IMG/VR virus record: IMGVR_UViG_3300035703_000008
Location: 144,933-208,932 of that record
Reading direction: 5' to 3' (one strand)
Length of the DNA stretch: 64,000 nucleotides
The position numbers and the translations under genes are program-made. Below the pieces are notes generated by a model. The model was not told where the DNA came from and made no database searches. It saw only the letters and a list, made by a program, of their open reading frames with translations. This document shows, in pieces, positions 14,465 to 57,339 of this stretch (position 1 is the first letter of the stretch; each line of letters opens with the position of its first letter).

Positions 14465-14472
14465 ATACTGAT

Positions 14473-14691
14473 ATGATACTAAACGAGATCTATGAACGCC
14501 CACCCGAGGAATTCCAAGACACTGCGCAGGACAACAGCCAACCACGCCTGGGCGATCTCCGCAAGACCAAACTCACTCTGCGTCAACTCAATAAGCTGCG
14601 CAGGATGAACGATGTTCGTTCTTACGAGTACAAGGAAAAGCTCAAAAACATCCAGCTGATCTATGCACCACCGGCTCAACCTCTGGGTTGA
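14473..14691 (+). CDS. small head-associated hypothetical protein
   Basis: 72 aa ORF between portal and core genes; TAAATA 5 nt upstream of ATG. Confidence 0.7.
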   Translation: MILNEIYERPPEEFQDTAQDNSQPRLGDLRKTKLTLRQLNKLRRMNDVRSYEYKEKLKNIQLIYAPPAQPLG

Positions 14692-14793
14692 TCGTCATTT
14701 TCCAGTAATATTTCCTGATTTTATAGCTTAAACTGCTTATAAAACCCTCCATGGCTTAAATATCTAACAGAGCCATTACTTTTGGAGGGTCTC

Positions 14794-15651
14794 ATGAATA
14801 AATTTGAACAACTGATCGAATACGTGATCAATGACGAGGAAGCAAAAGCTCGCGAGCTTTTCCACGAGATCGTCGTTGACAAGAGCCGTCAGATCTACGA
14901 AGAACTCATGCAAGAGGAGTCCACCGAAGACGAAGACGAGAAAGCCGAAAAGGCCGGTGAAAAAGTCACCAAAGATCTTGAGTACGATGATGCCAAAGAT
15001 CGCAAGGAAAAGAAGATGGACGAAGGCATGCACGACATGGATGAAACCATGGGCGGCGACGCTGCTGACGACCTCATCGACGATGTAGAAACCGAAGAAC
15101 AAGGCCTTTCCATGGAAGCCGAAGGTGATGACGAAGAAGATCATCACGATGACATGGGCGGCAACGAAGAGCTGGAAGATCGTGTGGTTGATCTCGAAGA
15201 CAAGCTCGACGAACTCATGGCTGAATTTGAAGCTCTCATGGGCGGCGATGAAGACATGGGCGACGAAGAAGGCGAAGAGATGGACATGGACATGGAAGTT
15301 GACACTGACGGTGGCGACGACATGACTGACATTGAAGTAGCTGACGACGAGTTTGAAACCGAAGGCATGATGGAAGCTGTGACACTGAAAGCAGTGCCCA
15401 AGCCCACACACGGCGATAACGGTGCTAACAACAAGAGCCCTGTGGCTGCCAATGCTGGCGCTAAAGGTGCAATGGCTCAGCCCGTCAAGATGACTGGCGA
15501 TACAGCGCAAGGACGTCCTGCTCCCACAGCAAAAGATGCCATCGGCAAGGTTGGTAACACACCTGCTCAAAGCACACAAGAACCCAAGCCTGCAACCAAG
15601 CCCCATCTGGCACAGGCCTCCGGTGTCAACACCAAGTCTGTTATCCAATAA
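14794..15651 (+). CDS. acidic prohead core protein (gp67/gp68-like position)
   Basis: very D/E-rich; lies between portal and protease; GGAGG RBS before ATG 14794. Confidence 0.7.
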   Translation: MNKFEQLIEYVINDEEAKARELFHEIVVDKSRQIYEELMQEESTEDEDEKAEKAGEKVTKDLEYDDAKDRKEKKMDEGMHDMDETMGGDAADDLIDDVETEEQGLSMEAEGDDEEDHHDDMGGNEELEDRVVDLEDKLDELMAEFEALMGGDEDMGDEEGEEMDMDMEVDTDGGDDMTDIEVADDEFETEGMMEAVTLKAVPKPTHGDNGANNKSPVAANAGAKGAMAQPVKMTGDTAQGRPAPTAKDAIGKVGNTPAQSTQEPKPATKPHLAQASGVNTKSVIQ

Positions 15652-15663
15652 GGATCCGGGTAA

Positions 15664-16290
15664 ATGGCTCTTTACCTAAGAGAAAATCTTACCTTCAACC
15701 AAGCCAACATTGTTGTGGAAGGCGCGGGAGAAGGTAAGGATCTCTATATGAAAGGTATCTGTATCCAAGGCGGGGTTAAAAATGCCAATGAGCGTGTTTA
15801 CCCTGTGCAAGAGATCGAGCGTGCAGTGCAAACACTGAACGAGCAGATCACCGAAGGCTACAGTGTCATGGGCGAAGTTGATCACCCCGATGATCTCAAA
15901 GTAAACCTAGATCGAGTCAGTCACATCATCACTTCGATGTGGATGGACGGTCCCAACGGTTTTGGAAAACTAAAAATATTGCCCACGCCCATGGGTCAGC
16001 TGGTTTCTACCATGCTGAATTCTGGTGTGAAGCTAGGAGTTTCGAGTCGTGGCAGCGGTAATGTCGACGACCGTACAGGATACGTCAGTGACTTTGAGAT
16101 AGTCACTGTCGATATTGTTGCCCAGCCCAGCGCTCCCAACGCATATCCCAAGGCTATCTACGAAGGACTCATGAACATGAAATATGGTCATCGTACCCTC
16201 GAGATAGCACGCGATGCTGGTCAGGACAACAAAGTACAGAGATACTTGAAGAGCGAAGTAATCAAGCTCATCAATGATCTCAAAATCTAG
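15664..16290 (+). CDS. gp21: prohead protease
   Basis: NANERVY, GEVDHP, VSH, GVSSRGSG, DIVAQPSAPNA. Confidence 0.95.
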   Translation: MALYLRENLTFNQANIVVEGAGEGKDLYMKGICIQGGVKNANERVYPVQEIERAVQTLNEQITEGYSVMGEVDHPDDLKVNLDRVSHIITSMWMDGPNGFGKLKILPTPMGQLVSTMLNSGVKLGVSSRGSGNVDDRTGYVSDFEIVTVDIVAQPSAPNAYPKAIYEGLMNMKYGHRTLEIARDAGQDNKVQRYLKSEVIKLINDLKI

Positions 16291-16299
16291 GAGAATCGC

Positions 16300-17391
16300 A
16301 TGTTTGATGCACTGAAACCACTACTAGATAGCGATCTTATCAATGAAGACACTCGCACAGCGATTTCTGAAGCCTGGGAAACCAAGCTCAATGAAGCTCG
16401 TGAGCAAGTGCGTGCAGAACTCCGCGAAGAGTTTGCACAACGCTATGAGCATGACAAAACAGTGATGGTGGAAGCCCTAGATCGCATGGTAACAGAAGGT
16501 CTCTCTGCAGAGATCCAGGCTGTGACTGCTGAAAAGCAAGCACTGGCCGAAGATCGCGTTCGTTTCCAAAGCAAGATGAAAGAAAGTGCCTCGAAGTTTG
16601 ACAGCTTCATGGTTTCTAAACTTGCCGAAGAAATCGGCGAACTGCGCAAGGATCGCAAACAGCACAACGAAGGATTCAAGAAACTCGAGAAATTCGTGGT
16701 GCGTGCCCTTGCTGAAGAGATCCGGGAATTTGCCGAAGACAAGCGTGACTTGGTGGAAACCAAAGTGCGTCTGGTCAGCGAAGCAAGATCCAAGCTGGAA
16801 TCACTGAAAGCACGATTCATCAAAGAATCTGCTAACAAGATGAGCCGGGCTGTTAGCCAGCATCTCCGGGCCGAACTGACCCAGTTGCAAGAAGACATCA
16901 AGATTGCTCGAGAGAACAATTTTGGTCGTCGCTTGTTTGAAGCGTTTGCTGCCGAATTTGGTGCTACTCATCTCAATGAGAACGCCGAAGTCCGCAAGCT
17001 CTCGCAGCTTGTTCAAGACAAGAACCGTCAACTGGCAGAAGCCACCCAGACCCTCGAGAAAGCCAAAGTTCTCGTTGAGTCCAAGGACCGTGAGATTCGC
17101 ATGATCAAAGAATCCAATGTGCGTCAAAGCACAATGGAAGAGCTGCTGAGTCCTCTCAACGAGGAAAAGCGTGAGGTCATGAAGAATCTCTTGGAAAGCG
17201 TTCAAACCAACCGTTTGAAGAACGCTTTTGAGAAATATCTACCAGCAGTACTCGCTGAAGGCAAATCATCGAAAGCTCGTCAAGTGATCGCTGAAAGCCA
17301 TGTCGAAGTCACTGGTGATAAAAGTGTCAAGGCAGTTGAAGACGAATCTCGTTCCAACGTGATCGACATCAAACGCCTGGCAGGACTGTAA
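16300..17391 (+). CDS. gp22: prohead core scaffolding protein
   Basis: coiled-coil, E/K-rich; lies between gp21 and gp23. Confidence 0.85.
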   Translation: MFDALKPLLDSDLINEDTRTAISEAWETKLNEAREQVRAELREEFAQRYEHDKTVMVEALDRMVTEGLSAEIQAVTAEKQALAEDRVRFQSKMKESASKFDSFMVSKLAEEIGELRKDRKQHNEGFKKLEKFVVRALAEEIREFAEDKRDLVETKVRLVSEARSKLESLKARFIKESANKMSRAVSQHLRAELTQLQEDIKIARENNFGRRLFEAFAAEFGATHLNENAEVRKLSQLVQDKNRQLAEATQTLEKAKVLVESKDREIRMIKESNVRQSTMEELLSPLNEEKREVMKNLLESVQTNRLKNAFEKYLPAVLAEGKSSKARQVIAESHVEVTGDKSVKAVEDESRSNVIDIKRLAGL

Positions 17392-17408
17392 TATAAAGGA
17401 GACATAGA

Positions 17409-18626
17409 ATGTCACAAGAACTGCTTGAAAGCCGTTGGGACGAGACCAAAGATGCCCTCATGGAAGGCCTCAAAGGTAGCCGTCGCAATACAATGGGTGT
17501 AATCCTTGAGAACACTCGCAAGTACCTGAAAGAGAATGCCAGCCCCGGTTCTACAGTTTCGGGTAACATCGCCACTCTGAACCGTGTGATCCTGCCAGTG
17601 ATTCGACGGGTCATGCCCACTGTCATCGCTAACGAACTCGTTGGTGTGCAGCCCATGACTGGTCCTGTTGGCCAGATCCACACTCTGCGTGTGCGTTATG
17701 CTTCGACCATGACTGACCAAACAGCAGCCGCTACTTCCGTAGTTGCTGGTGAAGAAGCTCTGTCACCATTTAAGATCGCTGTTGCTTACTCCGCTGGCGC
17801 TCGTGGTGCTGACAACGCTGCTACAACACAAACTGCTGCCCAGGGTTATGCTGGTGGCACAACTGCTCTGCTCGAGGGCAACGGTGGTCGTCAGATCTCC
17901 GTGCAGATCCTGAAGCAGGCTGTTGAAGCCAAAACTCGTAAACTGCAAGCTCGCTGGACATTTGAAGCTGCTCAAGACGCACAAGCCATGCACGGTATTG
18001 ACGTTGAGGCAGAAATCATGGCCGCACTTGCCCAGGAAATCACTGCTGAAATCGATCAGGAGATCCTCCTGAGCCTCCGCAGCCTGGCCACTACAGAGTT
18101 CACATACAACCAAGCTACCGTTTCTGGTACAGCTACATTCGTTGGTGACGAGCACGCTGCTCTTGCTGTTCTCATCAATCGTGTTGCTAACCTGATCGCT
18201 CAGCGTACACGCCGTGGCGCAGGTAACTGGGCAGTTGTTTCGCCCGCTTCGTTGACTGTGCTCCAGTCCGCAACAACTTCTGCTTTTGCTCGTACTACAG
18301 AAGGTACTTTCGAAGCACCTACCAACACCAAGTTCGTTGGAACACTGAACGGCGCAATGCGTGTGTTCGTTGACTCCTATGCCAGCGACTCCACACCTGT
18401 GCTGGTTGGTTACAAGGGTTCGTCTGAGGCTGACGCAGCAGCATTCTACTGCCCCTACATCCCCCTCATGAGCTCTGGTGTTGTTCTGGATCCCACAACG
18501 TTTGAACCCGTTGTGAGCTTCATGACACGTTATGGCTACATCGAGCTTACAAACACAGCCTCGTCCTTTGGCAACGCAGGCGACTATGTTGGTGAGATCG
18601 CTGTTTCTAACCTGTCGTTCTCCTAA
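17409..18626 (+). CDS. gp23: major capsid protein
   Basis: VGVQPMTGPVGQI, AKTRKLQARWT.E..QD..A.HG, EITAEIDQE, FYCPYIPL, MTRYG. Confidence 0.97.
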   Translation: MSQELLESRWDETKDALMEGLKGSRRNTMGVILENTRKYLKENASPGSTVSGNIATLNRVILPVIRRVMPTVIANELVGVQPMTGPVGQIHTLRVRYASTMTDQTAAATSVVAGEEALSPFKIAVAYSAGARGADNAATTQTAAQGYAGGTTALLEGNGGRQISVQILKQAVEAKTRKLQARWTFEAAQDAQAMHGIDVEAEIMAALAQEITAEIDQEILLSLRSLATTEFTYNQATVSGTATFVGDEHAALAVLINRVANLIAQRTRRGAGNWAVVSPASLTVLQSATTSAFARTTEGTFEAPTNTKFVGTLNGAMRVFVDSYASDSTPVLVGYKGSSEADAAAFYCPYIPLMSSGVVLDPTTFEPVVSFMTRYGYIELTNTASSFGNAGDYVGEIAVSNLSFS

Positions 18627-30300: not shown

Positions 30301-33300
30301 GTGGTTATGTAGCTGCTTCGGGCAACGTAAGCGGTGCTAACTTGTTGGCCAGTGGTTTTGTATCTGCCACAGGCAACGTAATTGGTGCCAATGTTGTCGC
30401 TGTCAATGGACTGTACGGTACCACATTGTCAGTTGTGGGCAATGTCGATGCTGGCAACCTCAACACCACAGGCAAAGTAGTTGCAGTTGGCAACGTTGAT
30501 GCAGGTAACGTCAACACTGCTGGTAATGTAGCTGCAAACTTTGTGTTTGCTACAGGCAACGTTGATGCAGGTAACCTGATCACTTCGGGCGTGATGACTG
30601 CCACAGGCAACGTAACAGGTGGTAATGTACTCACAGCTGGTATCGTAAGTGCTACAGGTAATGTAAGCGGCGGCAATGTAACCACAGCTGGTCGTGTTGA
30701 TGCCACAGGTAACGTGGCTGGTGGAAACTTGACCACAGCTGGTCGTGTTGATGCAGTTGGCAACGTGGCTGGTGGAAACCTGACCACAGCTGGTGCAGTT
30801 GATGCAATTGGTAACGTATCTGGCGGTAATGTACTGTCCAGCGGTATCGTAAGTGCCACAGGCAACGTGAGCGGTGGAAACCTGACCACAGTGGGACAAG
30901 TTCTTGCCACAGGCAACGTAGCTGGCGGCAACATCACCACAGTGGGCGGTGTCACTGCTACTGGCAATGTCAACGCATTTGACGTAGTAGCCAGCAACGC
31001 ACTGATTGGTAACAGCCTGGTAATTAGCGGCAACATCAACGGTGGAAACCTCAACGCTGTTAATGCTGTCAATGCCGGTACTACAGTGACCGCAGTTGGA
31101 AATGTCACGGGTGGTAATGTACTCACAGCTGGTATCGTAAGTGCCACAGGCAACGTCACAGGTGGTAATGTACTCACAGCTGGTATTGTAAGTGCTACAG
31201 GCAATGTAAGCGGTGGCAACGTAACCACAGCTGGTATCGTGAGCGCCACAGGCAATGTAACAGGTGGAAATCTGGTTGCGATTGGCGATGTCAGCGGTGC
31301 TACACTCACTATCAGCGGTAATGTAGCAGGTGGAAACCTGATCACTTCTGGTCAAGTTCTTGCCACAGGCAACGTAACAGGTGGTAATGTACTCACAGCT
31401 GGTATCGTAAGTGCCACAGGCAACGTCACAGGCGGTAACCTGATCACAGCAGGTGAAATGACTGCTACAGGCAACGTCACAGGCGGTAATGTAATCACAG
31501 CTGGTATCGTAAGTGCCACAGGCAACGTAACAGGTGGAAACCTTATTACTAGCGGTTCCGCTGAAATCACAGGAAATGCTTCGGCTAACAACCTGTCAGT
31601 GACAACTACTGCTGCGCTGGGCAACATCGTGATCTCTGGTGATGACGTAACTGGTACCAACGGCAAAGTAACATTCAATGCTGCTGGTGACGACATTGAC
31701 TTTGTGTTCTCGGGCAACAATGCTGCCAATTTGCTGGTAGTTGATTCTGGGGCCGACACAGTGTTGATCAACACTGGAACACCGGTTACAGACTCCTTGC
31801 TCACCATTGGTGGTGCAAGCTCAATGATCATCCCCGTGGGTAATACAAGCCAGCGTCCGCTAGCACCTGTGAGTGGTATGATCCGATTCAACAGCCAGCT
31901 CGACCAGTTTGAGTTCTATGACAACAACAGCTGGACCACAGCCGGTGTTGAGTTCACAGTGATCGCTTCCGAAACCTTCAACGGTGACGGTGCTACCACA
32001 GTGTTTACATTGAGCTCTAACCAGACCACAGCTTCCTGTATCGTCAGCATCAACGGTGTGGTACAGTTGCCCGTGACAGCTTACGCTGTAACAGGCGGAA
32101 CTACACTGACATTTACTGAAGCTCCTGAAGTAGGTGACGTGATTGAAGTACGCGAGATCACAACAACTACCACTATCATGGGTATCAGCAATGGTGATGC
32201 TTCTGCTCAGATCGAAGCTTCAGCCAACACCGCTGATATCGATATCACTGGTAACCTGCTGCCTACAGCCAATGTCACATATAACTTGGGTAGCAATACT
32301 GCAGCTTGGAACGACCTGTATCTGGCAGGTAACACCATTTACCTCGGACCCCTGCGTCTTGAAGCTGCTGACGCCAACACATTCGTGGTGTTGAACAGCA
32401 GCGGACAACAGGCCAACATCGACGTTGGTGCAGTTGACGTCTCGGCTATCTCCAGTGGAACCACAACAATTGGTATCGCAACACCCAATGGAAATGCTTA
32501 TGTGAGCGTGGGCGGACAAGCCAATCGTTTGGTGGTAAGCACTGCAGGCGCTAATGTTGATGGAACATTTGGTGTCACAGGCAACATCACTGGTGGCAAC
32601 GTAAGTGCTACAGGAATTGCTGGTACATTGAGCACAGCAGCACAGCCCAACATCACCAGTGTTGGTACACTGACAAGTCTGGCAGTAACTGGCAATATCA
32701 GTAGTGGCAACGTAATTGCTACAGGAATCGCTGGTACACTGAGCACAGCAGCGCAGCCCAATATCACCAGTGTTGGTACACTGGGATCGTTGACTGTAAC
32801 TGGCAATATCAGTGGTGGAAATCTTGCAGGCACATTGACCACAGCAACACAGACCAACATCACAACAATTGGTACACTGGGATCGTTGACTGTAACAGGC
32901 AACGTCAACACTGGTAACGTAAGTGGTACTACAGGTACATTTACTAATGTGTCTGGTACATTGACCACAGCAGCACAGACCAACATTACTAGTGTTGGTA
33001 CACTGGGCAGCCTGGCAGTTACAGGAAACGTTTCAACTGGTAACGTAAGTGGTACTACAGGTACATTTACTAATGTGTCTGGTACATTGACCACAGCAGC
33101 ACAGACCAACATCACATCGTTGGGTACACTGGGAAGTCTGGCAGTTACTGGCAATATCGGTGGTGGCAACCTCAACATTACAGGAAACATCGTTGACAGC
33201 GGAGCACTCAGCATCATCACAGGATCCAATGGTAATCTTACATTGAATGCTGGAACTGGCTCTATCATAGTCAACAGTGACATCCTAAATGGTCGTGCCA

Positions 33301-33746
33301 ATGGCGTCGGCAATATTGGTTCTAGTACTGGTTACTTCAACACAATTTTTGCCAAGGCCACAAGTGCTCAGTACGCTGACTTGGCAGAGATGTATGAAGC
33401 CGATGCTGCTATCGAACCTGGTACAGTGGTGTGCTTTGGTGGAGACAAAGAAGTACAAGTTTGTGCCCACGACGAAGACACAGCAGTGGCTGGCGTGATA
33501 TCTACCAACCCCAGCTACATCATGAACTCGGCCCAGACTGGCGAGCACGTGGTTGCTGTGGCATTCACAGGTCGCGTACCTTGTAAAGTAGTTGGTCCTG
33601 TCAAGAAGGGTGATCTCATGGTATCGGCTGGCAATGGTGCAGCCAAGGCCAAGAAGGATCCCAAAGTTGGTACAGTGATTGGTAAAGCACTGGCCGACTT
33701 TGATGGTGCCGAAGGCGTGATCGAAGTGGTAGTTGGACGCTTCTAA
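27387..33746 (+). CDS. giant repetitive tail fibre (2119 aa) with C-terminal intramolecular-chaperone-like domain
   Basis: dozens of 17-aa ATGNVxGGNxxTAGxVS repeats, DAATKxYVD motifs, GDRVLIKN...NGIY module, C-terminal YADLAE domain. Confidence 0.88.
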   Translation: MAVTRINNNQISDASAGNAYVGINAAVKLQDYSITSGKISNNLTYGSDLTVAGNLTVQGNTTTIDTVNVVVEDPLLLLAAAQTGSPTLDIGFIGKRGTSDNIAFVWDESEGLFAAAFTSSEVTNTTITINSYASVKSLDSAVTGNLSVTGISTFTGNVTLGNLFVDGQKTIDVGNSIIGNVQYPVANTDAATKKFVLDETSGGFFVTDAANASPQEVKKGEYLRFLGTTNEVDVAVGATDNVTIGLPANVTISNDLTVNNNATIEGEIFANGNILVSVANTYSLGNASHRFKDLYLSGNTLYLGNVELSQTTTDRTIPVVTISANGSDAVANAESFNASNAVTAGGNVTGANVIATANVTATGNVSGGNVLATAGLYGASLSVTGNIAGGNLSSAGIITAVGNIAGGNLAASGAIDATGNVTAGNVITVGVVTATGNVTGGNLITAGAVTATGNITATGNVVGGNLVTAGNLEANNASIAGSFSANNLSAVNNVTGNVITSNTSINGQTVVASGNVTAGNVISSGIVSATGNVSGGNLTTAGLVSATGNVSGGNLTTAGLVSATGNVSGGNLTTTGKVSAATGTFTGDVDVANLSASGTATVTGNVLAGNLNTGGKVVATGNIDSSAHISATNSITAGGNISGGNISASGTIAATGNVSGGNLTTLGAVIASGNVTGDNLFGDALFGVTGDFNIYAPAGNHSIILNATGTGTIDVGNVRITTLAEPSNDNDAATKGYVDSVAQGLDVKASVVVATTAPLPAFTYNNGNAGVGATITASAAGNLEIDGVTVSTGDRVLIKNETGADEPYNGIYVVTTAGTPSVPFELTRSTDMDNGSPSGEFPGAFTFVEEGTVNFDSGWVCTTNAPVTVGTTPITFQQFSGAGSIVAGNGLGKTGSTLFVNVDNDTTAIVADNVVVKAGANLVTPNIGNATGTTLTLTGNVVAGNVNSNGAVTAGTSVTATGNISGANLLASGYVAASGNVSGANLLASGFVSATGNVIGANVVAVNGLYGTTLSVVGNVDAGNLNTTGKVVAVGNVDAGNVNTAGNVAANFVFATGNVDAGNLITSGVMTATGNVTGGNVLTAGIVSATGNVSGGNVTTAGRVDATGNVAGGNLTTAGRVDAVGNVAGGNLTTAGAVDAIGNVSGGNVLSSGIVSATGNVSGGNLTTVGQVLATGNVAGGNITTVGGVTATGNVNAFDVVASNALIGNSLVISGNINGGNLNAVNAVNAGTTVTAVGNVTGGNVLTAGIVSATGNVTGGNVLTAGIVSATGNVSGGNVTTAGIVSATGNVTGGNLVAIGDVSGATLTISGNVAGGNLITSGQVLATGNVTGGNVLTAGIVSATGNVTGGNLITAGEMTATGNVTGGNVITAGIVSATGNVTGGNLITSGSAEITGNASANNLSVTTTAALGNIVISGDDVTGTNGKVTFNAAGDDIDFVFSGNNAANLLVVDSGADTVLINTGTPVTDSLLTIGGASSMIIPVGNTSQRPLAPVSGMIRFNSQLDQFEFYDNNSWTTAGVEFTVIASETFNGDGATTVFTLSSNQTTASCIVSINGVVQLPVTAYAVTGGTTLTFTEAPEVGDVIEVREITTTTTIMGISNGDASAQIEASANTADIDITGNLLPTANVTYNLGSNTAAWNDLYLAGNTIYLGPLRLEAADANTFVVLNSSGQQANIDVGAVDVSAISSGTTTIGIATPNGNAYVSVGGQANRLVVSTAGANVDGTFGVTGNITGGNVSATGIAGTLSTAAQPNITSVGTLTSLAVTGNISSGNVIATGIAGTLSTAAQPNITSVGTLGSLTVTGNISGGNLAGTLTTATQTNITTIGTLGSLTVTGNVNTGNVSGTTGTFTNVSGTLTTAAQTNITSVGTLGSLAVTGNVSTGNVSGTTGTFTNVSGTLTTAAQTNITSLGTLGSLAVTGNIGGGNLNITGNIVDSGALSIITGSNGNLTLNAGTGSIIVNSDILNGRANGVGNIGSSTGYFNTIFAKATSAQYADLAEMYEADAAIEPGTVVCFGGDKEVQVCAHDEDTAVAGVISTNPSYIMNSAQTGEHVVAVAFTGRVPCKVVGPVKKGDLMVSAGNGAAKAKKDPKVGTVIGKALADFDGAEGVIEVVVGRF
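28964..29108 (+). repeat. exact 51-bp coding tandem repeat (~2.8 copies)
   Basis: CGTAAGTGCCACAGGCAACGTGAGCGGTGGAAACCTGACCACA... starts at 28964, 29015 and 29066. Confidence 0.9.
32911..33112 (+). repeat. 126-bp-period coding repeat
   Basis: identical ~75-bp block CTGGTAACGTAAGTGGTACTACAGG... at 32911 and 33037. Confidence 0.85.
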
Positions 33747-39137: not shown

Positions 39138-39899
39138 ATGGCAGATCAAACGCTGGACCCACTCAAGAAACGACTCATTGAATATGTGCAGCTACAGCTC
39201 GGTGATCAGATCGTCGACATCGAGCTGGACCCGGCTCATTACGAAGCTGCATATCAACGCACGTTAGGTGTGTATCGTCAACGAGCGCAAAATGCCTACG
39301 AAGAAAGCTACAGTTTTCTCAAGCTCTTGGACAATGTCAACGAGTATGTTCTACCACAAGAGGTAAGCCAGGTCCGTAATATCTATCGCAGAAACATCGG
39401 ACTAGGCACTGGCGGTACCGGCAGTAGTTTTGATCCCTTCGCGCAGGCAGCCATGAACATCTATCTCCTGGCCTATGATCAGGCTGGTGGATTGGCCACT
39501 TACGACTTTTACAATCAGTATGTGGAACTAGCGGCTCGCATGTTTGGTGGGTACATCAACTACACATGGAATCCAGTGACCAAGAAGCTGCAACTCATAC
39601 GTGATCCACGCGGATCTGGAGAAGTAGTTCTGCTATGGACCTACAACCTCAGACCCGAGATCGTGCTCCTGAGCGATCATCAGATCAGCCAATGGATACG
39701 AGATCACATGGTGGGTGCTGCCAAATACATCATCGGCGAAGCTCGAGAAAAGTTCGCATCGATCGCAGGACCACAAGGCGGGTCGACACTGAATGGTGCT
39801 GCTATGAAAGCCGAAGGTCAGGCCATGATGGACCGTTGTGTGGAAGATCTCAAACTTTATGTGGATGGAAGTCAGCCCCTGACTTTCGTGATAGGCTGA
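39138..39899 (+). CDS. gp13: neck protein
   Basis: Y..LQLG..IVDIEL, IGEAREKF..I.GPQGG.TLNG..MK.E. Confidence 0.85.
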   Translation: MADQTLDPLKKRLIEYVQLQLGDQIVDIELDPAHYEAAYQRTLGVYRQRAQNAYEESYSFLKLLDNVNEYVLPQEVSQVRNIYRRNIGLGTGGTGSSFDPFAQAAMNIYLLAYDQAGGLATYDFYNQYVELAARMFGGYINYTWNPVTKKLQLIRDPRGSGEVVLLWTYNLRPEIVLLSDHQISQWIRDHMVGAAKYIIGEAREKFASIAGPQGGSTLNGAAMKAEGQAMMDRCVEDLKLYVDGSQPLTFVIG

Positions 39900-40177
39900 T
39901 GCGAGCCAGCGAATTCATCGACGAGCACCGCATGGTTTGGCGCCGCAATCCTCGGACTGGTAAAGTCACTCTACGGTGGCGTTGCGAATCGGGTTGGAGG
40001 AAAAATCGCACAGTGCCAGCAGTCAGCGATTGTGGTAAAGCCCCAGACATCGCGCAGGCACAGCAAATGAAACGCACTCGTGCCAAGACCAAAATCCGGC
40101 AAGCCCGAAGGACCAAGCGTACCAAACGAGTGAATCCATCTAGTAAATTGGCACAAAGACTCAACAAGAGTCGCTAG
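39899..40177 (+). CDS. small basic protein, possible internal head protein
   Basis: start at TGATG overlap; begins MRASEFIDE; R/K-rich. Confidence 0.65.
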   Translation: MRASEFIDEHRMVWRRNPRTGKVTLRWRCESGWRKNRTVPAVSDCGKAPDIAQAQQMKRTRAKTKIRQARRTKRTKRVNPSSKLAQRLNKSR

Positions 40178-48297: not shown

Positions 48298-49041
48298 ATG
48301 TTATTCGAAAACAACAAATATACTAAGTGGTATAATTTAATAGTTCAAAATGCACAAAATAGGATGACGGACTTATCCTATTTTGAGAGACATCATATCG
48401 TTCCAAAATCTCTCGGCGGCACAAATAATAAAGAAAATTTAGTAATGCTTACAGCCCGAGAGCATTATGTTTGTCACCTGTTGCTGACTAAGATGCTCTC
48501 TGGAGATTCAAAAAGAAAAATGATTTATGCATTTTGGCAGTTATCAAATCAAAAGAATTCAAGTCAAAAAAGATATTGCCCAACTAGCAAAACATATGAG
48601 ATCGCCCGAAAAATGTTTGCAGAGTGCCATTCTGCCAGAATGAAAGAAAATCATCCCTTAAATGATGAAAACAATAAACGCAAACATCAACTTGGAGTTG
48701 ATAAACGCGGACCAACTTCGGTTAAAGGAGCAAAGCGGCCAGAATCAATGAAAGAGAAAATGAGAAATAGAGTATGGACAGAGAAGGCAATACAAACAAG
48801 ATTAGATAATTGTCTCAAGAATGCAGCCGCAAGAAAAGGTAAATCCTGGTCCGAGAAAAAACGACAATCTACTCTTGACACTTATATAGAAAAAAATATA
48901 GATATTGCTTTAAAAATTATCCCTTTGCACGAATCTGGAATGAATAATCTCCAGATATCAAAAGAATTAGGAATTAGTTGGGAAAAAGTCAAATATACTC
49001 TGAAGCATAAAACGGATTTTCTGGCGTATCGGCCGCGGTAA
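48298..49041 (+). mobile_element. free-standing HNH homing endonuclease
   Basis: ERHHIVPKSLGG.N..ENLV.LT.REH...H.LL; basic NUMOD-like middle; C-terminal HTH; markedly AT-rich. Confidence 0.85.
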
Positions 49042-49596: not shown

Positions 49597-50199
49597 ATGA
49601 AAAAACTTGCACAATACCTGGCGGAGTCTGAAAAAACCTTTGATTACCGCATCAAATTCGTGGGTGAGGTACCTGCCGACTTTGTTCGCAGCTTCAAAGA
49701 AAAACTCAAAAAGTTTGATCCGGTGAGGATCACAGATGCCAAGACCACTCCTATCCTGGCTCGGCCCGCGGACTTTCCGGCACACACCAACCAGCGTGTG
49801 TCGATCATGGACTGCACTTTCCGTTATCCAGCCATCCCGCCACAGATCGCCCAGATCGCCAAGCTCCTGGGGCTTGATGAAGATCGTATCTGCATCAACG
49901 ATCTACACTGGGCCGAGGGCATGGACCAGGAACTGGCCGGTATCGACAGTCAAAGCCAGGATCTCTTAAACACACCTTATCCGGCAAACAGTCCCGAGCA
50001 GAATGCTCTCAAAAAGGACTATGCTGCCGCGGCCCAAGACAAACAAGTGGTAAAAAATTCAGCCACAGAAGCCACATGGACAGTGGCTGGAGGACGCACT
50101 CCTCCCGCTGAAACCACCAATGATTTGCCCATGGGAGTAAAAAGCCCAATGACGTCGATGAAAAGACCGCCACGGCCTGCCACAGGATTCCAGAAATAA
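49597..50199 (+). CDS. putative head protein
   Basis: N-terminus MKKLAQYLAE resembles the T4 capsid-targeting sequence. Confidence 0.6.
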   Translation: MKKLAQYLAESEKTFDYRIKFVGEVPADFVRSFKEKLKKFDPVRITDAKTTPILARPADFPAHTNQRVSIMDCTFRYPAIPPQIAQIAKLLGLDEDRICINDLHWAEGMDQELAGIDSQSQDLLNTPYPANSPEQNALKKDYAAAAQDKQVVKNSATEATWTVAGGRTPPAETTNDLPMGVKSPMTSMKRPPRPATGFQK

Positions 50200-50206
50200 G
50201 GACACT

Positions 50207-52105
50207 ATGATGAACAACATGTATGACATACTCGCAAAAATGAACCTCTTGGAAGGTCGAGGCAGCAAGCCTGACTTCTTGGATCTTGACAAAGACGGCA
50301 ACCGGTCAGAGCCCATGAAAGATGCCGCCAAAGAAGTTGACGAAAGTGCGCTACAAGCCTATCTTGGCAAGAAGAAATATGGCAAAGAGGGAATGAAGGC
50401 TTTGCAACAGGCTGGTCGGGAAGGTGCCAGTAAAGAAAGAATGGCATCTATTCGAGATCGTCATGACAAAATGGACGAAGCTGAATTTGGCGAAGGCAAC
50501 GAGTTTTCGGGCGCTAGACAAGCAGCCATCCGTGCTGGTAAACCCACGTTTTCCGTAGACGGCAAGACATATCGAGTTACTGGCGATACTTCAGATGAAA
50601 AGTCCATGGCAGAAGGCCGCACCGAGTATGATCCAGTGACAGGCACCACACGCCATCGCGGCAGTTATGGTACAGAATACCAAGGCGACGACGGCGATGA
50701 CGATGATTACGATCAGTGGGGCAATCGCAAGCCTGGTGCCAAGAAGAAAGCCGCAGTAGATCCCGCGGCACCCAAGCGTGGCCGTGGACGTCCCAAGGGC
50801 ACAGGTCGTGCCATCGGAGCCAAAGGTCCCACAGGTACGAGCAAGCTCATGCGTGAAGAGGACATGGAAGAAGCCATTGGTGACCCTGAAGGTCGTGGCG
50901 AGAGAGAAGCACAGCGCCGTCACCTGGCACGGGATCACAAAAAGCTCAACGACCTTGAGCGGCGTGCTCTAGAAAAAGCCAAGCAGACCAAGCTGCCTGC
51001 CAAGAAGGCCATGGGCGAAGACTACGACAAAGACGAGTACGACGAAGAAGGCGAGATGGCACAGAGTCAAGCTCGTACCATCGAAGATGCTGCTCAAGAG
51101 CTGCAGAGCATTCTTGATGCCCAGGAGAATCTGCCTGAGTGGGTACAAAAGAAAATCTCCCTGGCCATGGACTACATCGACACTGCTAGAGACTATCTTG
51201 CTGCCAATCGTCCCGAAGATGCGATGGTAGCAGAAAAAGCTGTGAGCAAAGCACAGCGTGCTGCTGCTGGAATCGCACATGCTGCACAAAAAGGCGACAT
51301 TCCCAAATCTGAACTGCGCGGTGCTTCCAAAGAAATGGCCAAGATGGAGCCCAAAGAACTCCGGAAGTTCGCCAAGACCCGAGAAAAAGGTCTTCCTGAG
51401 AAAGTCCGAGAAGTTGATATGGGCCAAGCCGATGCTCGCAAGACCTCTCCTTCCAGCAAAGAACACAACGATAAAGTTTTTGCCAATGCTCGCGAACGAT
51501 CAAAAAAAGAACGTGCTGAGCACGAGGCCAAACAAAAAGAAAAATCAGTCGAAGAGACCACGGTAGCAGGCTCAGTGGCCGTCAGCGATGCAGCACCCAA
51601 AGGCAAAAAAGGCATGCAGTTTGGCAAAGGTGTATATGAGAGCCGTCTAGAAGAAGGTTTCCAAGCGAGCTTGGATTCCGTGCTCAACGAAAGCATGAGC
51701 ATGAATGTCAGCACCGACGACCAGGGCGGGAAGAGCCTGACCATCACAGCCACCGACGCTGATGCAGAAAAGCTGTCCGACATACTCAAGCTGGCAGGCA
51801 TGCAAAGCAGTGGTTATCGTGATGCTTGTCCCAGTTGCGGTGGCATGCACGAAGGCGCTTGCAAGATGTCCGAAGACCTGGCCAACAGCCCTGATCCAGT
51901 TTCGGCCGAACTGGGCGACACCGGCGACTATGGAGTGGCTGGCGGCGTCAACGGTCCCAAGCAGCAAGTGAATCCCAACAATGCCGGCGACAATCCTTTG
52001 GCCATGCGCGACCTTGGTCGCACTGCACACACACTGAGCCTGGGCAAAGTGGACGAGAGCGTGGAACAGCGTCTCTGGGACATCTACAAGCGATACGAAT
52101 CATGA
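50207..52105 (+). CDS. modular charged internal head protein (AT-hook, DUF3008-like segment)
   Basis: KRGRGRPK AT-hook; KAVSKAQ..AAG.A..A.KG.....L.GASK.M DUF3008-like segment; many hydrophobic-X-E sites. Confidence 0.7.
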   Translation: MMNNMYDILAKMNLLEGRGSKPDFLDLDKDGNRSEPMKDAAKEVDESALQAYLGKKKYGKEGMKALQQAGREGASKERMASIRDRHDKMDEAEFGEGNEFSGARQAAIRAGKPTFSVDGKTYRVTGDTSDEKSMAEGRTEYDPVTGTTRHRGSYGTEYQGDDGDDDDYDQWGNRKPGAKKKAAVDPAAPKRGRGRPKGTGRAIGAKGPTGTSKLMREEDMEEAIGDPEGRGEREAQRRHLARDHKKLNDLERRALEKAKQTKLPAKKAMGEDYDKDEYDEEGEMAQSQARTIEDAAQELQSILDAQENLPEWVQKKISLAMDYIDTARDYLAANRPEDAMVAEKAVSKAQRAAAGIAHAAQKGDIPKSELRGASKEMAKMEPKELRKFAKTREKGLPEKVREVDMGQADARKTSPSSKEHNDKVFANARERSKKERAEHEAKQKEKSVEETTVAGSVAVSDAAPKGKKGMQFGKGVYESRLEEGFQASLDSVLNESMSMNVSTDDQGGKSLTITATDADAEKLSDILKLAGMQSSGYRDACPSCGGMHEGACKMSEDLANSPDPVSAELGDTGDYGVAGGVNGPKQQVNPNNAGDNPLAMRDLGRTAHTLSLGKVDESVEQRLWDIYKRYES

Positions 52106-53010
52106 AAAGCCTCAGAGACTACATCACCGAAGCTGAAATCTGGGTAGATACGCCTGCCCAGGGCGATGTGTTGGCCATCAATATCCGCGAAGAATGCCTG
52201 ATCGAAACGCACATCGTTGATGTGCGTACAGATGGCGTGGTGGTACATGCCGATGAAAAAATGATGAGTCTGCTGGAAAGCTATGGATACGCAGCCGAAG
52301 AGATCCGTAGATACGGTCCAGTGGGCACAGGCAGTGGCACTGGCTATACCGGCGTTGCCGAGACCTGTGGCAGCGAAAGCAACTACGAACCCGAAGATGC
52401 TTTTCAGCGAGTCATGGAACTGGCCGGACTTGGCACACCCAATGCCGCACACAACGATCCCCTGGCGGCCAAGGCCGCAGATCTTGCCCCTGTGGGCACC
52501 GAACAAGACCCCACCACTGCTACCACAGTGGACGAAGGCGTGATGTCAGAGGTAGATCAAGACTTGCAAGACATTGCTGACAGCCAAGATTTTGACATGC
52601 TGTATGCAGCCTTTGACGGCGAGATGGGCGGAGCAACCAAGACTTGGTTGGACAACATGTTTGCTAGAATAGCACAGCACCGTCGTCTGCATCCCGATGA
52701 TCAGCAAGAAGAAATCCTAGAGATCATGATGGACGAGATTGTGGCTGATTACGGCACCAACATCAGCGAAGCTGAATATCAGGGTCGTAAAGTACAACTA
52801 GGCAAGCCCACTCGTGGTGATGTGAAAAAGTTCAAGGTCTATGTCAAGGATCCCTCCACTGGCAACATCAAAAAAGTCAATTTTGGTGATCCCAACATGA
52901 AGATCAAAAAATCAAACCCCAAGCGCAGGAAAAGTTTCCGCGCACGCCATAACTGTGACAATCCAGGACCTCGCACCAAAGCTCGGTACTGGAGCTGTCG
53001 AGCCTGGTAA
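52102..53010 (+). CDS. putative internal head protein with basic C-terminal module
   Basis: MKSLRDYITE N-terminus; C-terminal VNFGDPNM.IK...P.RRKSFRARH.C......ARYWSC.W. Confidence 0.7.
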   Translation: MKSLRDYITEAEIWVDTPAQGDVLAINIREECLIETHIVDVRTDGVVVHADEKMMSLLESYGYAAEEIRRYGPVGTGSGTGYTGVAETCGSESNYEPEDAFQRVMELAGLGTPNAAHNDPLAAKAADLAPVGTEQDPTTATTVDEGVMSEVDQDLQDIADSQDFDMLYAAFDGEMGGATKTWLDNMFARIAQHRRLHPDDQQEEILEIMMDEIVADYGTNISEAEYQGRKVQLGKPTRGDVKKFKVYVKDPSTGNIKKVNFGDPNMKIKKSNPKRRKSFRARHNCDNPGPRTKARYWSCRAW

Positions 53011-53022
53011 AGGAACCGATCA

Positions 53023-53301
53023 ATGGCACAAGCCAACGTTTATACTACCGCATCCGCACAAACATGGTACACCGACAAAGCCAGGATAGTCACTGGCACC
53101 AATCCGGTGACTTATCAAGTCAATGTGGTTTATCCATCAGCCACAGGCAATCTCTATTCCAACCCTGCACAAGCACCAGCCAGCAGCATCACCGAGATCT
53201 ATGTGGGAGTGGGCAACAAGCTCACTGTTGTGGGCGGCAATGTCACCATACAAGAACTGGGCACAGCCACTTCGGCACAGCGCAGCGTGAGACTGGTCTG
53301 A
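53023..53301 (+). CDS. small structural protein
   Basis: 92 aa, RBS AAAGGA. Confidence 0.65.
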   Translation: MAQANVYTTASAQTWYTDKARIVTGTNPVTYQVNVVYPSATGNLYSNPAQAPASSITEIYVGVGNKLTVVGGNVTIQELGTATSAQRSVRLV

Positions 53302-53672
53302 TGCGAGCCAGAGAATTCCTTGCCGAACTCAAGAATAAAAACATATCCAAGCGCCAGCAGACAGCCACTCGCGGGCTCAATATCTATTCTGATTCAGAGA
53401 GGTGGAACAGTGATTACACCCTGAGCCGCCTGGGGCAGGCCGTGGCCTGTACTGATGGTACCAATCTCCCCGATGTCGACCCCAAGAGTTGGTTTGGCAA
53501 ACACAAGACCACACATCCTTATACTCGCGAAGAACAGGCCATGCTCAAGCAGGCTTATCGAGCCATTGGTGCCAGCTACAAAGATCTCAACGGCGGCGAC
53601 ATGGATTCCGAAGAGCTGCCTGATACCAATCGCCAGAGTCCAGTAAAACCATTCCGAGGGTATCCAAGATAA
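53301..53672 (+). CDS. hypothetical protein
   Basis: TGATG-coupled start MRAREFLAE. Confidence 0.65.
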   Translation: MRAREFLAELKNKNISKRQQTATRGLNIYSDSERWNSDYTLSRLGQAVACTDGTNLPDVDPKSWFGKHKTTHPYTREEQAMLKQAYRAIGASYKDLNGGDMDSEELPDTNRQSPVKPFRGYPR

Positions 53673-56187: not shown

Positions 56188-57339
56188 ATGGAACTCAAAT
56201 ACTGCGCTGCGCCCTGGAAAGGGCTGCACATCAATTTCCGCGGTGATGTCAAGACCTGCTGTGCTGGTGACCCCAACATGCTGGGAGATCTCAATCATCA
56301 CACCATACAAGACATCGTTTACGGCCGCACACTGAAAGAAATACGCCAGAGCATCAAATCTGGCGTGCTACATCCTGAATATTGTTCCAATTGTATCAAA
56401 GCCGAAAAAAACGGACGCAGCGAACGGCATTGGCACAATGATGTCAATCAAGACTTTGATGTGTTGTCTGCTGATGACGACTACTACGATCCCACCATTA
56501 TTGACATACGCTGGAATACCACTTGCAATTTGTCATGCAACTACTGCGGTGAATACTGCTCCAGCAAATGGCAAAGCATCAAAAAAGGCATACCCATCAA
56601 AAACGGCGCACGACCCTACTACGAGCAGGTGTGCGACTTCCTGGAACATCATGCCACAGACATAAAAGAAGTGGCTCTAGTGGGTGGCGAACCGTTTTTG
56701 CTGCCCGAAAATGAAAGACTCATAGATATCATTCCCGAGGATTGTATCGTGACATTGATTACCAATACTTCGGTACAACTGGAACGCAATGCCATCTTCC
56801 ACAAGCTCACCCAACGCCGGCGTGTTGGCTGGTCAATGAGCTTTGACAACATTGGCGCACGATTTGAATACGTGCGCCACGGCGGCGAATGGGATCTACT
56901 GAATCACAATGTGGATCTCATCAAGGATCTCATGACCCGTCAAGGTCACTGGGGCGGCATACATGCTGTGTACAATGTGTATAACTGCACACGCTTGGTT
57001 GAATTCCGGCAGTGGGCACACGAACGCGGACTCACTATCATGTGGCAGACCTTGTTCCAGCCTGAATACCTTGACCCTTTGCAGCACGGATCAGAACTGC
57101 GGGAATTGGCCGGTACTGAAGCACAACGATTGTTGGACACCTGCGGTGATATCCTGCAAGATTCTGAACGAGATTTTTTCATGCATGCAGTGACCAATCT
57201 CAAAAATACTGCTCCTCGATCAGAGTATCACAGTCAACTGTTCCGGCAGCATATCCAGGACAACGAAAACATCTACCATACCGACAAGCTGGGTCAGTTC
57301 ACAGAGCTCTGGCCCGAGCTTGCTTTCTTGCTTAAATAA
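56188..57339 (+). CDS. radical SAM protein with N-terminal Twitch/SPASM-like cluster
   Basis: YCAAPW...TCC...CSNC, CNLSCNYC, GGEPFL, ITN. Confidence 0.88.
   Translation: MELKYCAAPWKGLHINFRGDVKTCCAGDPNMLGDLNHHTIQDIVYGRTLKEIRQSIKSGVLHPEYCSNCIKAEKNGRSERHWHNDVNQDFDVLSADDDYYDPTIIDIRWNTTCNLSCNYCGEYCSSKWQSIKKGIPIKNGARPYYEQVCDFLEHHATDIKEVALVGGEPFLLPENERLIDIIPEDCIVTLITNTSVQLERNAIFHKLTQRRRVGWSMSFDNIGARFEYVRHGGEWDLLNHNVDLIKDLMTRQGHWGGIHAVYNVYNCTRLVEFRQWAHERGLTIMWQTLFQPEYLDPLQHGSELRELAGTEAQRLLDTCGDILQDSERDFFMHAVTNLKNTAPRSEYHSQLFRQHIQDNENIYHTDKLGQFTELWPELAFLLK

Follow-up and report, generated by a model that had tools for sequence, protein, structure and literature searches.

In phage T4, the internal proteins IPI, IPII, IPIII and Alt carry a short N-terminal leader, the capsid targeting sequence (CTS), which ends in [L/I]-x-E and is removed by the gp21 prohead protease, and the cargo behind this conserved leader is variable, often basic and packaged with the DNA. 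gp21 cuts after L/I-X-E, and the T4 prohead core proteins gp22, gp67 and gp68, whose genes lie between the portal and capsid genes, are cut by it at many sites into small fragments, most of which leave the head (PMC9026906). In the jumbo phages phiKZ, 201phi2-1 and SPN3US, a gp21-related protease also cuts many head proteins after Glu, with redundant sites in the propeptides (PMC9026906, PMC5694885). Furthermore, the polyvalent proteins of phages and conjugative elements carry 2-15 domains in one polypeptide, are encoded among virion genes, show mosaic domain shuffling and are proposed to be packaged and injected, and some of them are processed (Iyer et al. 2017, PMC5512222). Here we describe a 632-residue protein of an uncultured jumbo T4-like myovirus of roughly 320-345 kb, which is a string of about thirteen tiny modules with a hydrophobic-x-Glu motif at nearly every junction, and which is probably cut inside the young capsid into mini-proteins, although no experiment has yet shown the cutting.

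Could the head-maturation protease of this phage release a dozen mini-proteins from a single chain? An earlier note, made from the sequence alone, had proposed a protease-processed polyprotein whose module boundaries fall at 13 hydrophobic-x-E sites, while considering the motif weak in a Glu-rich protein. We confirmed the ORF and all 13 of these sites in the window, a 64,000-nucleotide stretch of the IMG/VR record IMGVR_UViG_3300035703_000008 (positions 144,933 to 208,932), and found the pattern to be stronger than the note had supposed. The features are collected in the table below. A DUF3008 (PF11450) domain was matched by Pfam at aa 345-400 (E=5e-16; 58.9 bits against a cut-off of 24). Among 40 non-redundant homologues, the AT-hook core G194-R195-P196 is invariant, D26/D28/D30/G31 of the DxDxDG loop are nearly invariant and E35 is invariant, and C541/C544 are invariant and C552 nearly so.

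Features of the locus in window coordinates. A slash within a motif marks the predicted cut, and "motif" is [LIVMF]-x-E.
Position (strand)	Residues	Feature	Supporting observation
15664..16290 (+)		Prohead protease, T4 gp21 / Peptidase_S77 type	Residues aligned to T4 His85 and Ser140 conserved
16300..17391 (+)		Scaffold (gp22-position) protein	Highest [LIVMF]xE excess in the genome (27 against 14.5 expected)
17409..18626 (+)		Major capsid protein, gp23-like	42-aa N-terminal region holds four conserved [L/I/V]-x-E sites, the last two around the position that aligns with the T4 gp23 cleavage site
39899..40177 (+)	92 aa	Gene with leader MRASEFIDE/H; further candidate capsid-targeted protein	
49597..50199 (+)	200 aa	Upstream gene with T4-CTS-like decapeptide MKKLAQYLAE/SE	65 of 72 syntenic homologues match the strict leader pattern, consensus MKTFAEYLTES
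50207..52105 (+)	632 aa	ORF of the putative modular precursor; the real start may be the second ATG at 50210	Homologues mostly start at the second ATG
50207..50254 (+)	1-16	N-terminal leader, ends L-L-E/G; proposed capsid-targeting propeptide	Most conserved part of the family
50255..50344 (+)	17-46	Module 1: acidic, DxDxDG calcium-loop-like motif (aa 26-35); ends V-D-E(46)	phrog_24078 (aa 19-45)
50345..50479 (+)	47-91	Module 2: basic helical hairpin (SALQAYLGKKKYG...); ends M-D-E(91)	Helices 47-71 and 76-85 (pLDDT 75-90); 61 of 61 occurrences preceded by the motif; sits at a different place in other homologues
50480..50494 (+)		5-residue spacer between tandem sites M-D-E(91) and F-G-E(96)	Tandem sites 5 residues apart recur before this module across homologues
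50495..50614 (+)	97-136	Module 3: GN.F.G helix plus beta hairpin; ends M-A-E(136)	119 of 136 occurrences preceded by the motif
50615..50872 (+)	137-222	Module 4: beta hairpin, acidic run and AT-hook K190-G198 (nt 50774-50800); ends M-E-E(222)	
50873..51019 (+)	223-271	Module 5: basic long helix, bounded by M-E-E(222) and M-G-E(271)	Present in only about 15-20% of homologues
51020..51235 (+)	272-343	Module 6: very acidic helical hairpin (DYDKDEYD...LPEWVQKKI...); ends V-A-E(343)	117 of 129 occurrences preceded by the motif; same module at the C-terminus of a 179-aa S-WAM2 protein, behind M-K-E/N
51236..51412 (+)	344-402	Module 7: DUF3008, basic; ends L-P-E(398) or V-R-E(402)	151 of 151 occurrences preceded by the motif; free-standing and N-terminal DUF3008 in cyanophages begin M-P-AVSK; S-CAM22 has I-N-E/KAVSK
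51413..51556 (+)	403-450	Module 8: optional helix; ends V-E-E(450)	Present in about a quarter of homologues
51557..51691 (+)	451-478 and 479-495	Modules 9 (TTVAGS...GKGVYE) and 10 (helix; ends L-N-E(495))	163 of 163 occurrences of TT..GS preceded by the motif
51692..51874 (+)	496-556	Module 11: beta-beta-alpha unit plus Cys/His cluster (C541, C544, H548, C552; nt 51827-51862); ends M-S-E(556)	
51875..52102 (+)	557-617 and 618-632	Modules 12 (LANSPD...NPNN..DNPLAM; ends V-D-E(617)) and 13 (terminal helix)	
52102..53010 (+)	302 aa	Next gene: CTS-like leader MKSLRDYITE/AE (nt 52102-52131), variable middle, I-S-E(223)/A directly before the conserved basic C-terminal module (aa 224-302, nt 52771-53007)	
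53301..53672 (+)	123 aa	Gene with leader MRAREFLAE/L	Hidden inside a longer out-of-frame ORF call (53064-53672)

To test whether the motif exceeds chance, we compared the protein with shuffled sequences and with an AlphaFold2 model. [LIVM]xE occurs 18 times against 9.5 in the shuffles (P=0.004), whereas the strict T4 motif [LI]xE occurs only 5 times against 4.7 and is not enriched, the excess being due to V or M at P3. The phiKZ-type motif [AGS]xE was not enriched either (16 against 17.0 expected). The model shows short folded modules joined by disordered linkers, and 16 of the 19 [LIVMF]xE sites lie in linkers of pLDDT<50, which make up 40% of the residues (binomial P=9e-5). Similarly, 16 of 27 linker Glu have a hydrophobic P3, compared with 3 of 34 Glu in the folded parts (P=1e-6), and 9 of 13 folded-segment starts have a site 0-5 residues upstream (P=6e-5). 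Three sites, however, are poor candidates for cutting: MHE(549)/G lies inside the Cys/His cluster, LPE(311)/W lies in the short turn between two helices of a folded module, and LEE(483) lies inside a predicted helix. Among 197 ORFs of the genome, the motif excess ranks the scaffold protein 1st, this ORF 3rd (z=3.2) and the next gene 5th.

We next compared homologues, a test that the earlier note had proposed, and obtained the predicted result. More than 2000 metagenomic homologues were found, in which the 15-16 residue leader is nearly invariant and almost always ends in [L/I]-x-E, while the module after it differs (PDFLDLD module, Gly-zipper, GN.F.G module and others). Modules are shuffled, gained and lost, and the motif stays at the junction whatever lies upstream. 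Across 180 distinct family proteins, 693 of 791 module starts (88%) directly follow [LIVMF]-x-E, against a 3.0% background, with 27-73 distinct upstream contexts per module. The module-start patterns were chosen with knowledge of the boundaries in the note, and site conservation among homologues is partly expected from descent alone; the unbiased test is weaker, with 30 of 59 long-insertion ends (51%) within 2 residues of a site, against a 15.5% background. At the junction sites, the P1 Glu is 85-100% conserved, while P3 swaps among L, I, V and M. The motif is not the strict T4 L/I-x-E.

The genome encodes a Peptidase_S77 prohead protease (phrog_207, E=2e-59) with 34% identity to T4 gp21, in which the residues aligned to T4 His85 and Ser140, probably the catalytic ones, are conserved, and the enzyme is present in 5 of 5 near-complete relatives. 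A pattern modelled on the T4 CTS MKTYQEFIAE hits only 5 of 2008 Met starts in the genome, three of which flank this ORF, and these leaders and the gene order are conserved in 79 related loci. The leader of the ORF itself (MNNMYDILAKMNLLE) resembles the T4 CTS less than the leaders of its neighbours do, and no other gene in this genome has a YDIL-type leader. The gene lies among structural genes, between tail tube and terminase. On the other hand, no promoter or terminator signal ties it to late transcription: the T4 late-promoter consensus TATAAATA had one match, as expected by chance, sigma-70-like promoters were fewer than in the shuffles (10 against 15.3), and terminator-like sites were within 2 sd of them (18 against 12.8, sd 3.2).

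The C-terminal module of the next gene provides a natural experiment. In HTVC026P, Aegir, CRP-901 and a Nitrosopumilaceae virus, this module is a free-standing ORF (M-A-[KTI]-Y-x-G) that starts exactly at the predicted P1' residue; these four, together with roseophage CRP-6, where the module is fused to an XkdF-type prohead protease, make 0 of 5 genomes with S77. On the other hand, in the cultured myoviruses C48C1, HTVC008M, Melnitz and immuto, all of which carry S77, it is embedded behind [LM]-x-E (S-WAM2, which has the aa 272-343 module of the present ORF instead, makes the tally 5 of 5). Furthermore, 33 of 35 relatives of the next gene carry the module, nearly always directly behind [LMIV]-x-E. 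This case shows a general way to infer protease sites by comparative genomics alone. A further link to the capsid comes from a free-standing 69-aa DUF3008 protein of cyanophage S-SCSM1, which is annotated as a virion protein; 45 virion proteins of that phage were identified by mass spectrometry (PMC9602691), although the label for this protein (ORF 93) could not be traced to a named entry in the paper.

Other comparisons gave little. Megablast of the region against cultured phages gave no match, tblastn of the whole protein hit cyanophage proteins only with aa 284-331, and tblastn of the 200-aa and 123-aa neighbours and of aa 47-136 gave no match. Searches for free-standing copies of aa 272-343 and aa 344-402 returned 1 and 3 hits, the latter on contigs of 532-706 bases and so probably fragments. 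PF11450 was not found in the control genomes, a PDB sequence profile and a Foldseek search of the model yielded nothing meaningful, and a literature search for DUF3008 found no papers.

These results are best explained, in our view with moderate confidence, by a capsid-targeted precursor that is cut by the prohead protease at several junctions. We propose that the protein is made together with the other structural genes and that its leader takes it into the scaffolding core of the prohead, as the CTS does for IPI, IPII and IPIII. The gp21-type serine protease, once active, would remove the leader and cut after Glu at the [L/I/V/M]-x-E sites that end almost every linker, releasing about a dozen mini-proteins of 15-86 residues. 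The basic fragments (AT-hook module, DUF3008, helical modules with pI 9.4-10.2) would stay with the packaged DNA and enter the host with it, whereas acidic fragments and 5-residue spacers may leave the head. Prohead targeting, cleavage, the sites used and the fate of the fragments are inferred, as is any DNA-binding, host-takeover or anti-defence role of the kind suggested in the note; no proteomic or biochemical evidence exists for this uncultured clade and no cultured phage carries the full-length family. Moreover, only 5 of the 19 sites have the canonical L or I at P3, 13 having V or M and one F, whereas the scaffold has 21 L/I against 5 V/M, and cleavage after V/M-x-E by an S77 protease is untested.

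If the junctions are really cut, this would be a polyprotein strategy in a tailed phage, in which one gene supplies a dozen capsid-borne mini-proteins and the head-maturation protease is the only processing enzyme. It would extend the T4 capsid-targeting principle to a large, uncultured group of phages, give a sequence rule (leader plus [L/I/V/M]-x-E junctions) for predicting injected micro-proteins in metagenomic phages, assign a first biological setting to DUF3008 and several orphan viral mini-domains, and suggest natural design rules for loading foreign peptides into T4-like capsids. A broader scenario is possible but doubtful: a widespread clade of aquatic jumbo T4-like phages, and in simpler form the T4-like cyanophages and pelagiphages, might use the prohead protease as a release enzyme for an evolvable cassette array, in which any small module placed behind a junction in a leader-bearing precursor is packaged, cut free and delivered with the DNA. 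The same modules would be exchanged with free-standing genes of podoviruses, siphoviruses and even archaeal viruses, which must first express them after entry, and the capsid would thus pre-deliver a set of DNA-binding or host-modifying peptides.

Alternatively, the protein could be an accessory prohead-core protein that is cut at many sites only so that it can be cleared before DNA packaging, its modules acting only during assembly. This is unlikely but remains the strongest competitor. In T4 the proteins cut at many L/I-x-E sites are the core proteins, the motif excess is highest in the scaffold, the backbone of the family is conserved rather than hypervariable, and the tandem sites 5 residues apart resemble the redundant clearing sites described for phiKZ and SPN3US propeptides. 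However, a separate scaffold gene already sits in the canonical place between the protease and capsid genes, about 32 kb away; the modules are under strong sequence constraint, with many columns 90% or more conserved; and modules also exist as independent genes, or fused to other proteins, in viruses without this assembly system. Several fragments are also basic and similar in size to the retained T4 IPI* (76 residues, PMC3012670) and to IPII (100-aa precursor), and the annotation of the S-SCSM1 protein likewise weighs against mere clearance.

Less likely still, only the leader may be removed, the rest staying as one long, largely disordered multi-domain protein with junction motifs unused or only partly used. 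The leader site is indeed canonical [L/I]-x-E in almost all homologues, whereas the internal junctions are mostly V/M-x-E, and some virion-packaged polyvalent proteins are delivered unprocessed (PMC5512222). On the other hand, there is no obvious reason, other than a shared recognition signal, for the same three-residue pattern to persist in front of at least seven unrelated modules in so many upstream contexts and with such free exchange at P3, and the free-standing versions of the neighbour's module lack the motif and start at P1'. Finally, a disordered intracellular protein whose pattern is a by-product of acidic linker composition or helix capping is very unlikely, despite its richness in Glu (61 of 632), the lack of enrichment of the strict T4 motif and the absence of late-transcription signals, because 59% of linker Glu have a hydrophobic P3 against 17% expected from linker composition (P=1e-6), the motif is absent from the free-standing versions of the neighbour's module, and the gene lies among structural genes inside a conserved cluster with CTS-like leaders.

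How does this locus compare with the known systems? Multi-module proteins of T4-like cyanophages (S-CAM22 gp092, S-SSM4 CYXG_00074 and S-WAM2 P29B0810_170), which occur in S77-type phages, share modules with it (DUF3008; the DYDK.EYD...LPEWVQ module) and show the same junction pattern in places, but they are shorter or built from other modules, only weakly similar (E about 1 for DUF3008) and uncharacterised, and not every junction there has a hydrophobic P3. Polyvalent proteins likewise combine unrelated, shuffled domains, but they carry large enzymatic effector domains (MPTase, ART, nucleases and others) and often their own peptidase, whereas here Pfam found only DUF3008 in 39 of 40 members, and LysM and Gly-zipper in one member each, no enzyme was found in ten larger members, and release would depend on the prohead protease. 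The inner-body and ejection proteins of phiKZ, 201phi2-1 and SPN3US belong to a different phage lineage, use S/A/G-x-E or A-x-E, and have long propeptides plus one mature protein, not a string of mini-modules. The T4 core proteins gp22, gp67 and gp68 show a motif excess comparable to that of this phage's own scaffold, but the present protein consists of conserved, independently occurring mini-domains and is encoded outside the head module (12674-18626). Similarly to the T4 internal proteins, it has a conserved leader ending in L-x-E with variable cargo behind it. However, the T4 internal proteins are single small proteins (IPII 100 aa, IPIII 193 aa) without sequence homology to it, whereas here one chain carries about 13 modules with a site at almost every junction, a leader of a different sequence type, and L, I, V or M at P3 rather than L or I.

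The window is the last 64 kb of a 208,932-bp IMG/VR viral contig that is estimated to be 60% complete, and it belongs to a T4-like myovirus. In addition to the head genes listed in the table, it encodes a tail sheath, tail tube, large terminase and gp32. The capsid protein is 63-66% identical to those of cultured jumbo phages such as PA5oct and Vibrio phage 2.275.O, and five near-complete relatives are 316-344 kb in size, two of which have terminal repeats. Most homologues of the ORF studied here start one codon later, and a Shine-Dalgarno-like AAGGA lies just upstream.

Features discussed in the text (window positions unless stated otherwise)
Feature	Position	Description
Radical-SAM-like genes	56188-57339 and 5045-6298	Match radical-SAM domain phage families (PHROGs, E about 1e-11); the first lies between the structural cluster and the terminase
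Portal	12674-14464	
72-aa ORF	14473-14691	In the position of T4 gp67, between the portal gene and the 289-aa ORF
289-aa ORF	14782-15651	Precedes the protease
Prohead protease	15664-16290	gp21-type; phrog_207, E=2e-59
Scaffold-position protein	16300-17391	
Major capsid protein	17409-18626	gp23-type
N-terminal region of capsid protein	17409-17534	About 42 residues before the conserved core (65 in T4)
Very large ORF	27387-33746	2119 aa; in the tail/baseplate part of the window
Gene with CTS-like leader	39899-40177	Leader MRASEFIDE
HNH homing endonuclease	48298-49041	phrog_655, E=4e-40; between the TnsA-like 'head closure' gene and the 175-aa gene
Upstream gene with CTS-like leader	49597-50199	Leader MKKLAQYLAE
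Modular precursor ORF	50207-52105 (+)	632 aa
Next gene	52102-53010	302 aa; leader MKSLRDYITE
92-aa gene	53023-53301	Begins MAQANVYT...
ORF call	53064-53672	202 aa; probably not one gene
Gene with CTS-like leader	53301-53672	123 residues; leader MRAREFLAE
Gene with CTS-like leader	genome position 5183-5557 (outside the window)	Leader MRAQEFVTE
Roseobacter phage CRP-6 gp55	335-1013 of its locus	Module of the next gene fused to an XkdF-type (Peptidase_S78_2) prohead protease
Synechococcus phage S-SCSM1 gp93	1495-1704 of its locus	Free-standing 69-aa DUF3008 protein

An earlier note had described the protein as a string of unrelated short modules with boundaries at hydrophobic-X-E sites, and we found that all 13 sites and all the modules that it named are present. 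By simple shuffling, [LIVM]-x-E is enriched two-fold (18 against 9.5, P=0.004), whereas the strict T4 motif [LI]-x-E is not enriched (5 against 4.7), the excess being V or M at P3. The signal becomes strong when structure is taken into account. An AlphaFold2 model built on 40 non-redundant homologues shows short confident elements joined by low-confidence linkers; the predicted elements are helical hairpins at aa 47-85 and 280-333, a helix plus hairpin at 99-123, DUF3008 helices at 348-389, and a beta-beta-alpha unit at 497-529. Of the 19 [LIVMF]-x-E sites, 16 lie in linkers that cover 40% of the chain (P=9e-5). Similarly, 16 of 27 linker Glu have a hydrophobic residue two positions before them, compared with 3 of 34 Glu in folded parts; the expectation from linker composition is 17% (P=1e-6). 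Furthermore, 9 of 13 starts of folded segments have a site 0-5 residues upstream (P=6e-5). Genome-wide, the excess of the motif ranks the scaffold protein first, this ORF third and the next gene fifth of 197 ORFs.

A word-based search found more than 2000 metagenomic relatives, but no cultured phage was found to have the full-length protein. The N-terminal 15-25 residues are the best conserved part of the family. There are two types of leader, MNNMYDILAKM... and MTFFYDLNKRLA..., and they end almost always in [L/I]-x-E. What follows the leader, on the other hand, differs between homologues: the PDFLDLD module, a glycine-zipper segment, the GN.F.G module, and others. The modules are also shuffled. 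The SALQAYLG module follows module 1 here but follows the acidic hairpin in many homologues, the PDFLDLD module is C-terminal in one homologue, and modules 5 and 8 are present in a minority. One of the 40 non-redundant homologues scanned carries a LysM insert and one a Gly-zipper insert, and further hits carry LysM or Gly-zipper according to precomputed Pfam assignments.

Despite this shuffling, the junctions follow a rule. In 180 distinct family proteins, 693 of 791 occurrences of seven recognisable module starts are directly preceded by [LIVMF]-x-E, against a background of 3.0%, and each module has 27-73 different upstream nine-residue contexts, although the homologues are not independent samples. 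Tandem sites five residues apart are common. At these sites, Glu is 85-100% conserved, while P3 swaps among L, I, V and M between homologues. A test that does not use our module definitions was weaker but still positive: 30 of 59 long insertions end within two residues of a site, against a background of 15.5%.

The protease of this phage is 34% identical to T4 gp21, and the residues aligned to T4 His85 and Ser140, which are presumably catalytic, are conserved. T4 gp21 cuts after L/I-X-E, removing 10-19 residue capsid targeting sequences (CTS) from internal proteins and cutting the core proteins into many fragments (PMC9026906). The short N-terminal region of the capsid protein holds four [L/I/V]-x-E sites that are conserved in the window and five relatives, and the last two are around the position that aligns with the T4 gp23 site. 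The 72-aa ORF in the gp67 position starts with MILNE followed by IYE, giving two sites in its first 8 residues, and no family match was found for it.

We verified the T4 CTS, MKTYQEFIAE, in IPII and IPIII from the T4 record and searched the genome with a pattern modelled on it. Only 5 of 2008 Met starts matched (types MK..Y[IL].E and MRA.EF[ILV].E), all five look like real genes, and three of them, those starting at 49597, 52102 and 53301, flank the ORF. In 79 related loci, the leaders are conserved, for example MKTFAEYLTES in 65 of 72 upstream genes, and the order is kept: a roughly 200-aa gene, the family gene, a variable gene, a roughly 92-aa gene, then one or two roughly 123-aa genes. Synteny in the relatives also supports the view that the 202-aa ORF call is probably not one gene, since its 5' part overlaps the conserved 92-aa gene out of frame and its 3' 123 residues, starting at the in-frame Met at 53301, form a separate gene. 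The ORF therefore lies in what looks like an internal-protein gene cluster, and the five leaders look like a T4-type internal-protein repertoire in a distant jumbo clade. The HNH homing endonuclease nearby is probably a mobile insertion, as a close relative (L007) has no gene there; in the same relative, the homologue of the first radical-SAM-like gene has a weak SPASM hit.

Does the motif belong to the modules, or does it go with the protease? The next gene, which has the leader, a variable middle and a conserved basic C-terminal module, offers a natural experiment. In 33 of 35 relatives that carry it, this module is preceded almost always by [LMIV]-x-E/AEYQG (the slash marks the predicted cut), and the same module occurs in cultured viruses. 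Of five such genomes in one group, none has Peptidase_S77. In four of these, podovirus HTVC026P, siphovirus Aegir, roseophage CRP-901 and a Nitrosopumilaceae spindle-shaped virus, the module is a free-standing ORF that begins Met-Ala-[K/T/I]-Tyr-x-Gly, which is exactly the predicted P1' residue. In the fifth, roseophage CRP-6, the module is fused to the N-terminus of an XkdF-type prohead protease and preceded by L-E-E, a second, independent link of the module to procapsids. On the other hand, Peptidase_S77 is present in 5 of 5 genomes of the other group. In four of these, the myoviruses C48C1, HTVC008M, Melnitz and immuto, the module is embedded in a longer protein directly behind L-T-E, L-E-E, M-M-E or L-D-E, and C48C1 also has a CTS-like leader, MKKFKQYIDE; the fifth is S-WAM2, which carries the aa 272-343 module of the 632-aa ORF instead. 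The motif is therefore not part of the module's fold but goes with the protease.

For the ORF's own modules, the evidence is thinner but agrees. DUF3008 begins right after Met in S-SCSM1 gp93 and in S-SSM4 CYXG_00074, whereas it follows I-N-E in S-CAM22 gp092. The acidic hairpin follows M-K-E in a 179-aa S-WAM2 protein whose N-terminus is MKTFKQLRE. S-SCSM1 gp93 is annotated as a 'virion protein', and the genome paper reports 45 virion proteins by mass spectrometry, 13 of them of unknown function, although we could not find this ORF named in the text or the supplement. This protein has no N-terminal leader but ends in ...RTFKEFLEYIE, which resembles a capsid targeting sequence placed at the C-terminus; T4 Alt is known to be processed at both ends. 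S-CAM22 gp092 and S-SSM4 CYXG_00074, from cultured T4-like cyanophages, are 395 to more than 525-aa proteins made of several small modules, including DUF3008, and are encoded next to a gene annotated as the small terminase subunit. They may be simpler cousins of the family studied here.

The most likely mechanism, inferred from sequence, prediction and comparison alone in a clade that is uncultured, is that the precursor is targeted by its leader to the prohead core, where the protease removes the leader and cuts the junctions. This would give about 13 fragments of 15-86 residues plus one 5-residue spacer. Five fragments are basic, with pI 9.4-10.2 or an AT-hook, and one 72-residue hairpin has a net charge of -14. 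By analogy with the T4 internal proteins, the basic fragments would stay on the DNA and enter the host. We consider multi-site processing in the prohead more likely than not, but we are much less confident of any particular downstream function.

Other explanations remain possible. The protein might be a core accessory protein that is cut only to be cleared, which we regard as unlikely but as the best of the alternatives, or only its leader might be removed, which is more doubtful still. The main weakness of our interpretation is that 13 of the 19 sites in this protein have V or M at P3 (one has F), which is not the T4 consensus, whereas the scaffold of the same phage has 21 L/I against 5 V/M. 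However, P3 specificity is known to differ between lineages (L/I in T4, S/A/G in phiKZ and A in SPN3US), and L, I, V and M replace each other at the same junction among homologues. In addition, three sites are poor candidates: LEE483 inside a helix, LPE311 in the short turn within a folded module, and MHE549 inside a Cys/His cluster. A non-virion protein whose motif is merely compositional is the least likely alternative.

Language-model and structure look-ups place both DUF3008 and the module of the next gene in many purely viral clusters, where they are alone or fused to Zeta-toxin, NT5C, NTP-transferase or peptidoglycan-binding domains, although these are leads only. In its proposed mechanism, the system works like the T4 CTS and internal-protein system and like the multi-site processing of jumbo-phage head proteins, while in architecture it resembles the polyvalent proteins of Iyer et al. 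(PMC5512222). It differs from these known systems in that one chain strings together a dozen non-enzymatic mini-modules, with the prohead-protease motif at almost every junction, and in that the same modules exist as independent genes in S77-less viruses.
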